From: Phaeosaccion multiseriatum
Lineage: Eukaryota; Protista; Ochrophyta, other classes
DNA length: 64,000 nt
Direction of reading: 5' to 3'
Assembly (NCBI GenBank): GCA_965112735.1
Contig: OZ218963.1
Span: forward strand, 682,001-746,000
How positions within the stretch are numbered: position 1 is the first letter of the stretch; the number at the start of each line of letters is the position of its first letter. The notes beneath the pieces were generated by a model. The model ran no database searches and was not told the DNA's origin. It saw only the letters and a program-made list of their open reading frames with translations. Of the stretch, positions 451 to 53,544 are shown piece after piece. The position numbers were made by a program, and so were the translations under genes.

Positions 451-3400
451 CTGATCCTGTTCGTAGTCGGAGCGGACAACGTCACTGAGCACTCTCCGTG
501 GTTGCTCTCTTCTCTTCTCGAGCTTCTGCGCGTTCTCTAGACGAGCCACCTGAAACTCAAACCGATCAAGAAGGGAACGACGAGCAAGGGTGAATTCGTG
601 AGCAGTGGGGCTGAGAAAGACGTAACAACAAATTTACGCGGCGCGAAAAAAAAAAGAGCAAAAACGTTTCTCCCGCTTCCCATCCACCCCTCACCCACCC
701 ACCCACTCACTCACCCACCCACCCACCCCCCCCTCCTCCTCCTCCTCCTCCTCCTCCTCCTCCTCACCTTGTTGTTCCAAAGCCGTCCCTTCTTCGTATA
801 CTCTTTCGCCAAATCCTCCCACCGCTTTCGCAGTCCGTGCTTCCTCTTCCGCACCACCTTGGTCACCAGAGGCCGCATCAATCTATGTAACGCCTCCCTC
901 GCCCTCCACCCCGGGGACAGGAACGGCTCTTCATAAGCACCACAGATGGGCGACGCAGTAGCACCACCAACTGCTACCAAGCTCTCGTTTGGCAACAAGC
1001 TTGAGCTCTCACACTGCCTCTCGTCGTGCTGGTCGTGTTGGTAGTTTAACTGTGAAAGCTCAGCCTGTGCGGACGCCGCCGCCAGCCTGTTCTTCAGCAA
1101 CAGCCCTCTAACGTTGGCCATCCCTGTGCTCGTCAAGACGCTTACTCTGGGCCGTTTCTTACGGCGCTGCTGTATCACCAACTGCTGCTGCTGGTGCTGT
1201 TGCTGCTGCTCCAGCTGCTTGCCCTGCCCCTGCTCCCCGTTGGCGCCATCACCCCCGCCCCTCTTCTCGCCGCCATCGCCAGCCCCTGTTGCCGCCGCCG
1301 CCGCCGCCGCCGCCGCTGCCTCCTTCTCCTCGAAGCCTTCATCACCGCCCTCGGCCTCATGGACAGAATCGGTTAGCTCCAAGAAGTGGGGCAACAACAA
1401 CCCCAAGCCACCGCCGCTGTACACCCCAAGCTTTCCAAACTCCCTCTCCTCCTCCTCCCTTCGACACATTTCTCGATGGAGTTTCTCGGACCTCTCGACA
1501 CGGCGTACGACGGCTTCCAGATGGTCTGTTGTGTGTGCTAGTGCGACGCTGAGCTGTTCCACAGAAGGTAGGAGCAGTGAGCCCCCCCTTGCCTTCCCTC
1601 CCTTCCTCCCTCCCCCTTCCCTTCCCTCACCACTCTCCCCTCCCTTCCCACCATCTCCGTCATTACTCTTCATACTACTACTGCTCCTCTCCTCCTCCCC
1701 CTCCTTCTCCGCCTCCTCCTCCTCCTCCTCCTCCTCCTCGGTAAGGGCATGATCTCCTGCTCCCATCAAAGCCGTTTCGAGCCGAGAAGAATAGGCCCCC
1801 GGCAGGCGGCGCTTCCTGGACACCCCTCGGCAGAAGCGAATCACCGCTCCTGCGTCCTTGACGTCCTTGGGCGAAGTCATGAGGCTACTCACCGTTACAG
1901 CCTTCTGCCTCTTCCTTTCCCTTTCCAGTCTCTCCGCTTCCTCCGCTGCTTGCTCCGCTTCAAGCAGTGCTGCTTGTGCCGCTGCTCGCTCGGCCAGCTC
2001 TGCTTGCTCTACTCGCTCAGCTTCCCTCTTCCGCTGCTCCTCCACCCGCTTGTCCTCCTTCTCCTTCTCCTCCTTCTCCTTCTCCTCCTTCTCCTTCTCC
2101 TCCTTCTCCTCCCCTTCCTCCTCCTCCTCCTCCTCCTCCCTCCTCTTCCTCTTCCTCTTGACATCTTGTTGCTGTCCAGCGGTGGCCTTTGAAGGCTTTT
2201 CTTCGCCCACCGGTGGATTCTCCTTGGCGTCCCCTTCTTCCTCCTTCACCAAACCGTCCCCCTTTTTAGTACAATCCACGTCATCATTCTTGCTTACACC
2301 CAACCCCTCCTTGGCAGACTGCGTATGTGAAGCCACGTGGCTGCTTGCTTTACCACCTCGCCTTCCACTCATTGACCCCTTTCTCTCCATACGAACAGAG
2401 TCCAGGACGGAGGTCTCCTGCCTCCCTCCCTCCTTGCCGCCTTTCTTATCGTCGTCGATAACAGCACCGGTGGCTTGGGCCTGGGCCAGCCTCACAGGTG
2501 GCGCAGAACAAGGCGAAGGCACAGCATCCTCCCCTTCCTTCCCCGCGCTCAGCGGATTCAAACTCGAACTACTGCGCATCCTCTTCCGTCCCTTCCCTTT
2601 GCCCTTGCTCTTCATCTCAGGTGCTGCAGTTGGTGATACAGCAGAGGCAGCAGGGGGAGACGGCGATGAAGTAGAAGGGCCGCCTCCTTCCTCCTCTACA
2701 TCCATGGCCTCACAGTTGTCAACAGCGTCCTCATCCTCCCTTTCCTGCACATCGGAGAGGCTGGAAGCTTTCCGAGCAGAAACGCCGCTGCTCCCTTGGC
2801 CTTGCTCCTGCTGGTGCGGTTTCTGTAACCTTCCCTCCTTACCCCCCGCATCTTCCTCCGTAGCATCTCCAAACGAGTGCTCTCTCAGCTTCCTGCCCTT
2901 CTTAGCGGAGGACACGTTTGTGGCTTTCCCCGAGGGCACTTCCCCACCCCCTCCGTATGGTGGTGCGTCTCTTTCCTCGGCGGAGCTCGTACTCCGTGGG
3001 GTGCCATTTCCCCTCTGCTCCTCTGCAAGTTTGTTGAGTTTGGCCATGGCCTGATCGAGGAAGGGGCAGAGAGGGGGGGGAGGGGAGGAAGGGAGGGAGG
3101 GAGGGAGGGAGAGAGAGAGAGAGTGAGGGACAAAGAGCACCGTCAACAACAAGCAGAAGGACGAGGACACATGCGTGGGCGGTGCCGACCCTTGTACCAG
3201 TCCGTCTCCGTTCCTATGCCTCGACCTCTGTCATGTAGTATGCCTCCATCCATCCTCCCTCCTATAGGCCTCCATCCATCCTCCCTCCTATACGCCTCCA
3301 TCCATCCTCCCTCCTATATGCCTCCATCCACCCTTTTACTCCCACGTGGCACACCCACCTCACGAACGGCATTCTTCTTTTTCCTCTCTCGCTTTCGCCT

Positions 3401-52465: not shown

Positions 52466-53544
52466 CCATGGCGGGGGAGCAGCAGAGCACACACACACAC
52501 ACACACACACACACACACACGCACACACGAATGTACGCACACACACTCACACTCACACTCACACACACACTCTCACACACACGCATTCGCGCAGCTGAGG
52601 GAGGGTAGAGGAAGAGCTGAGTGGTGTCGCTGAGGTGCATACCAGAGTGTGTCAGCAGAGTGTCAAGCAGCCCCTCCCCTGCGGGAGGGAGGGAGGGAGC
52701 GCGTGCCTGCGTGCGTGCGTGCGTGAGTGCGTGCGTGGGTGCGTGGGTGCGTGTGCGTGCTTGCATGAGTGAGTTGTGGAATGAAGGTGGAAGTGTGGAG
52801 AAGGTGCATGCAATGCATGGCTGCGGCTTCTGTATATATGTTTTGTTTATTAGGAAGGGGTGGGTGGGTAGGGACGAACGTATGCGGGCTTGGCTAGGGG
52901 CGGGGGAAGAGGGGGACAAGTGGAGAGCGCTACAGCAGTTGGTGGTACAGCGGCAAGGTCAGGCGCCGTCGCCGATTCGGTATGGAGTATGGATGGCGGT
53001 GGATGGGGGGGGGCGGTGCAGCGGGAGGGGTGCGTCGGGATTTTGTAAACTCAAACTCAAACTCGATGGACTCGAGCAAATGGAGTTGCCATTGTATTGT
53101 ATTGTATTGTACTTCGAAGTACTAACGTGTTAAGAGTGACGTGAGTTTAGTGTGCCGTTTGCACATATCACAAAAGGCATTTGGCAACAATATTGTAATA
53201 ATATTAGAATAATAGTAGTGTTTGAAAGGGGGAAAGGAAGAATTTCCTGAGAGCACATCTTTTTCATCGGCTATAAATGTAGCACTGCTTGACATCAATG
53301 ACGGCCCTGCTTGACATCGCTTGTAGCACTGCCCTAGGCCGATTTCTAACACGAATGCTACCCTGCAGCCAGGGGCGGCAGCCGGTGATACAGCATCAGT
53401 AGTTGGTGATACAACAGCAGCAGTTGGTGATACAGCAGCAGCAGTTGGTTATACCTACCGCCTCTGCGTCTTCTCCTTTGCCTTACATCATAGCGCAGCA
53501 CTCCACTACCATCCACCCACTGCCAAAGCCATCCATCCGCTACC

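Follow-up and report, generated by a model that had tools for sequence, protein, structure and literature searches.

The locus and its repeated motif

The subject of this study is a short DNA word, with the consensus CAG-YTGGTGRTA-CAG when its flanks are included, that recurs in a stretch of 64,000 nucleotides from the ochrophyte alga Phaeosaccion multiseriatum (NCBI GenBank assembly GCA_965112735.1, contig OZ218963.1, positions 682,001 to 746,000 of the forward strand). This whole stretch is called here the window, and all positions are counted from its first letter. The window is gene-rich eukaryotic DNA of ~57% GC that is extremely rich in microsatellites; Pfam matches in it include a class I histone deacetylase (HDAC), a Na/Ca exchanger, kelch, DUF2358, SOUL and UQ_con, and the best named relative of the exchanger comes from Phaeothamnion confervicola, with 65% identity. 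When related variants are included, the motif occupies about 20 loci between positions 962 and 53456 (52 kb), of which approximately 12 are single units and approximately 8 are arrays, and its density in the window is roughly one copy per 2 kb.

The 9-nt insert TTGGTGRTA together with one CAG makes up a 12-nt unit. Two subtypes were distinguished, the A-type TTGGTGATA with 19 copies and the G-type TTGGTGGTA with 10, to which three copies of CTGGTGGTA can be added. The word TTGGTGATA was counted 19 times on both strands, while dinucleotide-preserving shuffles gave an expectation of 0.17 and a highest value of 2; likewise, TGGTGGTACAG was counted nine times against 0.06 expected, so that both words are enriched more than 100-fold over the shuffles. 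The first-pass annotation, made from the letters of the window, had called for the word to be measured against its background, and these counts show it in excess. The copies of TTGGTGATA start at 1173, 2630, 4333, 5143, 5155, 5167, 5179, 7352, 17638, 17818, 18163, 18196, 18244, 18343, 33106, 34020, 35669, 53403 and 53424, and a copy was found at every position previously listed for this main word. Those of TGGTGGTACAG start at 16496, 17620, 17665, 18364, 40286, 40301, 47078, 47118 and 52940; here the earlier coordinates also hold, except that the copy near 41526 is TTGGTGGTA followed by CAC and not by CAG.

An unbiased k-mer census, from which low-complexity words were excluded and in which loci were counted if they lay at least 300 bp apart, ranked the motif 12-mers first among complex 12-mers by number of loci (9 loci, 15-17 copies). 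The word YTGGTGRTA is also the most common insert between CAG runs, with at least 9 cases, followed by the point variants CGG and CAA with 3 cases each. Of the copies that have CAG on one or both sides, 23 agree with TTGGTGRTA in full, 7 deviate at a single position and 2-3 at two positions, which corresponds to a per-site decay of the family of ~3-4%. Exact copies make up about two thirds. Seven of the nine core positions are near-invariant, and the variation sits at two transition sites (Y1 and R7).

Association with CAG tracts

The first-pass annotation stated that most copies lie in or beside CAG runs, and this was confirmed: CAG stands directly upstream in 22 of the 34 YTGGTGRTA copies and directly downstream in 22 of the 34, and CTG in none. 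Conversely, 13 of the 45 CAG tracts of at least three units have a motif within 30 nt. Both boundaries of the unit are sharp. No complex recurrent insert was detected in the other microsatellite classes of the window, including AGG (75 runs), AG (72), AGGG (51) and ACTC (45), all of which are more abundant than the CAG class. Such a fixed orientation within a single microsatellite class is what would be expected of the insertion of a microsatellite-specific retrotransposon of the non-LTR (long terminal repeat) type.

A comparison of the flanks of the window copies revealed nothing in common beyond the CAG repeats. The CAG found on both sides could represent a 3-bp target-site duplication, which in this setting is indistinguishable from the tract itself. 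At several separate loci the triplet next to the motif deviates in the same way, with TAG upstream at 17638, 17653, 53403 and 18265, and CGG downstream at 18163, 18196 and 35669; these recurrent variants fit copied units longer than 9 nt and, although few, are suggestive of conversion between tracts. Searches for half-sites and split sites showed that half-sites have no enrichment of their own and that none is split by a longer insert. Other origins were considered and rejected. The footprint of a cut-and-paste transposon, or a miniature inverted-repeat transposable element (MITE), was discarded given that TTGGTGATA has no inverted symmetry, and an ordinary one-locus minisatellite was discarded given the ~20 separate loci over 52 kb and the ~12 single units.

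Description of the copies along the window

The leftmost locus is a degenerate copy, CAGTTGGTGGTGCTA (962-976, -), followed by a single A-type copy, CAG-TTGGTGATA-CAG, that lies between (CAG)4 and (CAG)2 and reads QLVIQ in an 839-codon open frame (1170-1184, -). A second single A-type copy (2627-2641, +) is antisense to the same frame, where it reads VSPTA, and is also present in the independent strain X5 described below; a third, with CGC downstream, lies at 4330-4344 (-). Four perfect tandem 12-mers, (CAGTTGGTGATA)4, read VGDT four times in a long open frame (5140-5190, -), and another single A-type copy is found inside a (CAA/CAG)n tract (7349-7363, -).

The next group of copies begins with a left-variant, left-truncated G-type unit, ATGGTGGTACAG (16495-16506, +). 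It is followed by an array of 15-nt units (17619-17688, -) that comprises three G-type units, one A-type and one left-truncated unit, GTGGTACAG at 17680, with CGG and TAG triplets between them. A single A-type copy is placed seven codons past a candidate ATG at 17796 (17815-17829, +). Three further A-type copies (18163, 18196 and 18244), separated by CAG-run spacers, and the variant TTGGAGGAAGTACAG (18265) form the cluster at 18160-18279 (+), and a spacing of 33 nt is seen at 18144-18268; about 90 nt from these forward copies there is an inverted pair of one A-type and one G-type unit (18340-18375, -).

In the remaining part, a single A-type copy sits between (CAG)5 and (CAG)4 (33103-33117, +), another has no upstream CAG and is followed by an (AGGG)n microsatellite (34017-34028, -), and a third has a CAG flank on neither side, with CGG downstream (35669-35677, -). 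The array at 40264-40311 (+), made up of an 18-nt variant, CTGGTGCTTCTCCTACAG, and two G-type units, belongs to the first copy of a segmental duplication; its paralogue in the second copy (47056-47128, +) is longer by one unit, which includes a (TA)n expansion. Between them lie the variant TTGGTGCTACAG (41451-41462, +), a G-type core TTGGTGGTA preceded by CAG and followed by CAC (41528-41536, -), and a second locus of the 18-nt variant, CTGGTGCCTTCGCTACAG (43242-43259, -). Finally, a single G-type unit preceded by TACAGCAG occurs at 52939-52950 (+), and a cluster of four units, namely CCGGTGATACAG, two A-type and TTGGTTATACC, with TAG and CAA variants in its flanks, occurs at 53382-53456 (+) where there is no long open frame; this array begins with a left-truncated unit (GTGATACAG at 53385).

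The 18-nt relative deserves a separate description. At its three locations (40264-40281, 47056-47073 and 43242-43259) it reads CTGGTG-CYTYBCY-TACAG or CTGGTG-CTTCTCC-TACAG, that is, both ends are those of the 12-mer and the middle is a pyrimidine-rich stretch of 7 nt. It may be a third subtype, or it may indicate that it is the two ends of the motif that are conserved.

Reading frames and coding context

Within single long open frames the motif occurs in both orientations, and its readings cover no fewer than three phases. The ATG-initiated frame at 17796-18452, in which MAAAAGAVGDTAAP... is followed further on by AAAVSPTGTAAVPPTA, reads AVGDTA, AVSPTG and AVPPTA from motif copies; in this frame, forward and inverted copies give rise to short Ala/Val/Gly/Thr/Ser/Pro insertions within poly-Ala tracts. 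The copies at 35669 and 53403 are outside any long open reading frame (ORF). The length of the 12-nt unit is a multiple of three, and the unit is open in five of the six frames in its A-type form and in all six in its G-type form. The labels of exon and intron, as well as the three unrelated proteins mentioned in the first-pass annotation, are defined by ORFs only. That annotation proposed that the motif spreads at the DNA level, and this view gains support from the several phases and orientations per open frame, the copies outside ORFs, the 22-to-0 polarity and the confinement to the CAG class. Its additional statement, that the frame giving a stop is never the coding frame, does not hold as an argument, given that it is circular: the coding frames had themselves been inferred from open frames. 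No relatives of the motif-bearing ORFs were found in a protein collection without the source genome's own proteins, and the motif is absent from one 6.5-kb contig of P. confervicola, a result that says little.

Several motif copies fall in a 1396-codon open frame (3317-7504, -). The G+C content at third codon positions (GC3) of this frame is 0.54, compared with 0.72-0.86 in confident exons, although the assignment of frames by GC3 is confounded by the CAG repeats themselves. It has no Pfam domain, and parts of it are the read-through of microsatellites (for instance CVRVCVRAC from a CGCA repeat); it is doubtful that it forms one continuous exon. A different kind of regularity was noticed in the introns of the class I HDAC gene (10339-13520, +), which start with G/T-rich sequence, i.e., (GT)n after 12133 and GGGA/GGA after 10345, and finish with complementary C/A-rich sequence, i.e., (CA)n before 12632 and 13520, with CT-rich runs before 10180 and 11340; the two ends of these introns are therefore mutually complementary.

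Occurrence in independent sequencing runs and in public data

The region 2400-7500 was compared with Logan contigs of four sequencing runs, three from the source sample (X1, X2 and X8) and one from an independent sample or strain (X5). X5 shows about one single-nucleotide polymorphism (SNP) per 300 bp relative to the source (~0.4% diverged) and has indels of its own. The motif loci at 2630, 4333 and 5143-5187 were found in all four runs, and one X5 contig spans the copy at 4333; the first-pass annotation had advised confirming the motif in raw reads, and contigs from independent runs contain it, also in a strain that is recognisable by its own SNPs. The bin-averaged depth at these three loci is ~8-40 times that of their single-copy neighbours in the source-sample runs and ~4-8 times in X5. 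In addition, 23-35 contigs per run end at the motif edge at 2626, and their upstream consensus is GCAGCAG..., with an agreement elsewhere of ~0.5. These loose ends with unrelated flanks indicate that many other loci of the genome share the motif and CAG and nothing more. The rise in depth, together with the dozens of unrelated flanks, argues against both an assembly artefact and a piece of some longer element; the motif is real and is found throughout the genome. A large, pure satellite of the 12-mer is unlikely as the source, since the 31-mers of the array reach only ~26 times the single-copy depth in X1.

X5 also differs from the source in length. It carries insertions of +30 nt and +18 nt (at 2816 and 6138) inside long open frames, both multiples of three, which is a weak sign of coding constraint. 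One of its contigs jumps 308 nt (from 3049 to 3358); the skipped stretch, rich in repeats and possibly intronic, could reflect an indel polymorphism.

A search with the 21-mer CAGCAG-TTGGTGATA-CAGCAG gave one chance bacterial match each in the JGI metagenomes and in prokaryote genomes, and none in IMG/VR. The exact tandem 27-mer CAGTTGGTGATACAGTTGGTGATACAG was present in three phage-like IMG/VR contigs of 43-44% GC (L004:315-341, L005:13104-13130 and L006:2590-2616), two of which are homologous; we judge these matches to be a chance 12-nt tandem repeat, which would encode a DTVG repeat and has no CAG-tract context. A literature search by sequence retrieved unrelated primers only.

Age and turnover of the copies

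The two copies of the segmental duplication mentioned above (39820-40420 and 46490-47240) are 93.75% identical over 592 aligned columns, and each contains one of the motif arrays 40264-40311 and 47056-47128. Between the paralogous arrays the differences are a single 15-nt unit, the one with the (TA)n expansion, and one T/C substitution. This difference of one unit indicates that the arrays evolve like minisatellites, by slippage after arrival. Other differences between the duplication copies are a 25-nt tandem unit, CATTAGACCATTAGTCTACAGCGGG, present ~3 times in one and 6 times in the other, and a 54-nt indel.

Possible mechanisms of dispersal

We consider that the motif may be a non-coding, DNA-level dispersed repeat that spreads by DNA-templated copying between CAG tracts and is afterwards subject to local slippage, and we assign to this explanation a probability of about 0.35. 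It builds on observed features, namely the enrichment, the polarity, the CAG restriction, the absence of common flanks of greater length, the finding of the motif in an independent strain and the gain or loss of units. From them we infer the copying mechanism, a bias for interrupted tracts and a filtering by selection. According to the model, a broken or stalled 3' end that terminates in CAG repeats would pair with a CAG tract elsewhere, copy across the interruption of the donor and return via the CAG repeats on the far side, either by ectopic gene conversion or synthesis-dependent strand annealing (SDSA), or by microhomology-mediated template switching. The CAG repeats of the host tract would act as homology arms, and in this way the orientation would be fixed and the triplet register kept; the model would likewise account for the lack of an element body and for the flank variants (TAG upstream, CGG downstream) that recur at separate loci. 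After arrival, slippage would produce the arrays of 12, 15 and 33 nt, and coding tracts would tolerate the copies since the unit length is divisible by three and the unit is open in five or six of the six frames. Given that the flanks beyond CAG are unrelated in the window and in the other contigs, the copied unit would consist of the motif and CAG only. Folding predicts that the insert lowers the stability of hairpins (from -10.2 to -8.3 kcal/mol for CTG and from -6.0 to -4.3 kcal/mol for CAG) and fixes their register, with the minimum-energy structure accounting for 0.56 of the ensemble versus 0.20; on the basis of these predictions, interrupted tracts could be the more stable donors.

Several observations weigh against tract-to-tract copying. 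The CAG runs beside the copies are short today (0-7 units), so that classical homologous recombination would be unworkable and only a microhomology-type switching would serve, and the copies at 34020 and 35669 have no CAG flanks at all. A general copying process should also have produced riders in the AGG, AG, AGGG and ACTC tracts, where there are none. Furthermore, a single family, albeit with subtypes, is observed, although any sequence bracketed by CAG could spread in the same manner. As for its timing, the three loci compared with X5 are all filled, and an empty allele was seen at none of them; the presence of the array in both copies of the segmental duplication implies that it is older than the duplication; and the decay of 3-4% per site equals neutral ageing since that local event and fits a single old burst. 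Indeed, a single ancient burst, by any mechanism and with no current activity or function, whose remains were reshaped by slippage and duplication, would account for the sharing of the three loci with a strain ~0.4% diverged, for the array common to the 93.75%-identical copies and for the decay. However, only three loci were compared between strains, contigs built with k=31 do not resolve the copy number of tandem arrays, and the origin of the burst would be left unexplained, so that this idea, which we hold to be rather unlikely as the whole explanation, complements the others instead of replacing them.

A tentative alternative, to which we give less credit than to copying between tracts, is RNA-templated insertion by a reverse transcriptase: a nicked CAG tract would prime the reaction, about one unit would be copied, and the end would be rejoined at the first CAG microhomology. 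The process could be an abortive target-primed reverse transcription of a CAG-specific non-LTR element whose RNA ends in ...UAUCACCAA(CUG)n, or the work of a telomerase-like enzyme with the template CUG-UAUCACCAA-CUG, in which the CUG ends would allow alignment and re-alignment. This would explain the CAG-only targets, the strict polarity, the sharp boundaries, the redundant CAG ends of the 15-mer and the perfect arrays of 12 nt, and the A-type and G-type subfamilies would correspond to separate source templates; CAG specificity and the subtypes are in fact better accounted for in this way than by the DNA route. Non-LTR retrotransposons that target microsatellites are moreover a known class (PMC4640811). 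Left-truncated units at the start of arrays (17680, 53385 and 16495) outnumber right-truncated ones 3 to 1, but this asymmetry is not significant, and in place of a 5'-truncation series with a shared 3' end only those three left-truncated partial copies were found, although 5'-truncation usually gives varied lengths. Neither the copies of the window nor those of dozens of further contigs run into a longer shared body, and a longer parent element was rejected given that the flank comparison, the half-site and split-site searches and the consensus of the loose ends gave only CAG repeats in common. No Pfam match to a reverse transcriptase, endonuclease or transposase was present in the 128 open frames of the 64-kb window, nor was a candidate template RNA found there with Rfam or among tRNAs.

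A candidate template RNA would show ...CUGUAUCACCA-3' or an acceptor stem 5'-G(A/G)UACAG. Some resemblances may be due to chance: a single base separates the G-type TTGGTGGTACAG from the start of animal tRNA-Gly-GCC (5' segment TTGGTGGTTCAG), the A-type is similar to U6 (TTGGAACGATACAG or TTGG-AAC-GATACAG), and TGGTG..., with its TGG start like that of a primer-binding site, could pair with an RNA ending in ...CACCA-3'. Many such comparisons were made, and near matches are expected by chance.

It seems doubtful to us, on the sequence evidence, that the 15-mer CAG-TTGGTGRTA-CAG is instead a selected recognition site of a DNA-binding (or RNA-binding) protein, in which Y1 and R7 would be tolerated degeneracy. 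The near-invariance of seven of the nine core positions, the proportion of exact copies, the high density and the clusters agree with such a role, and the 15-mer contains CAGTTG, which we take to be similar to a Myb core. On the other hand, a binding site offers no evident reason for the confinement to CAG in a fixed register or for perfect head-to-tail arrays of 12 nt; nor is there one for the even occurrence of the copies in open frames whatever the phase or orientation, and their decay equals the neutral ageing since the segmental duplication. An artefact of assembly, polishing or adapters, or a chance word of low complexity, is refuted by the presence of the motif in all four runs, including the independent strain with its SNPs, and by the more than 100-fold excess over the shuffles. 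The core is distantly like a primer segment of Oxford Nanopore Technologies (ONT), TTGGTG-CTG-ATA, a resemblance that may be due to chance.

If copying between tracts is the mechanism, microsatellites would form a genome-wide homology network that moves short sequences, also into coding regions, and the alga would offer a natural system in which to study how CAG·CTG tracts are repaired and how stabilising interruptions arise, with a bearing on the biology of repeat expansion. A stronger version of copying between tracts, which we regard as unlikely, would make the motif a selfish replicator of minimal size: a passenger of 9 bp without genes or ends of its own, which would take the CAG microsatellites of the host as homology arms, be favoured by a biased copy-paste when fragile pure CAG tracts are repaired from stabler interrupted ones, and be filtered only for frame. 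If true, hardly any mobile sequence described from eukaryotes would be smaller. Should the agent be a reverse transcriptase or a binding protein instead, the motif would be a ready genome-wide tag for finding the enzyme or factor. In practical terms, about a third of the CAG tracts are marked by the motif, which could mislead gene prediction and the annotation of repeats in this genome. The feature is striking, and its host is a poorly known alga.

Comparison with known systems

Non-LTR retrotransposons that insert into microsatellites are a described class (PMC4640811). They include lineages with a restriction-like endonuclease, such as the R4/Dong and CRE/NeSL types. The motif resembles them in the use of one microsatellite class, in its fixed orientation and in ends that match the repeat; however, it is only 9-12 nt long, and no element body, ORF, 5'-truncation series or source copy was found for it. 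In Eimeria, CAG repeats in coding sequence coexist with dispersed telomere-like heptamers (PMC4199364). As in the ochrophyte, the CAG repeats run through coding and non-coding DNA in several frames, and a second short word is dispersed throughout the genome; nevertheless, the two organisms are unrelated, and the second word of Eimeria is a telomere-like tandem repeat and not a single unit inside CAG tracts, whereas here the 9-mer interrupts the tracts.

With regard to length and distribution, a close parallel is found in bacteria. The DNA uptake sequence (DUS) of Neisseria and the uptake signal sequence (USS) of Haemophilus are dispersed words that spread via biased DNA uptake in transformation. 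Like them, the motif is a word of 9-12 nt that occurs about once per 2 kb, in genes and intergenic DNA and on both strands, and that is tolerated in coding sequence by choice of frame; in contrast with the motif, they are not tied to a microsatellite, and we know of no comparable uptake system in an alga.

At human polyglutamine loci, CAA and CAT interruptions stabilise CAG tracts. The motif, too, breaks up a pure CAG tract, and slipped hairpins are predicted to be weaker and fixed in register when they contain it, but CAA and CAT are point variants of one triplet that originate separately at each locus, whereas the motif is a complex 9-mer present in many unlinked tracts. In the literature searched, no case was described of one multi-nucleotide interruption common to many unlinked CAG tracts. 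A joint dispersal of a microsatellite and a conserved neighbouring sequence is characteristic of the dipteran 'mini-me' elements and of the microsatellite families of Lepidoptera, and in this respect they are similar to the motif and its CAG tracts. The conserved flanks of those families measure tens to hundreds of nucleotides and come from recognisable mobile elements, whereas the sequence common to the copies of P. multiseriatum is restricted to 9-12 nt.

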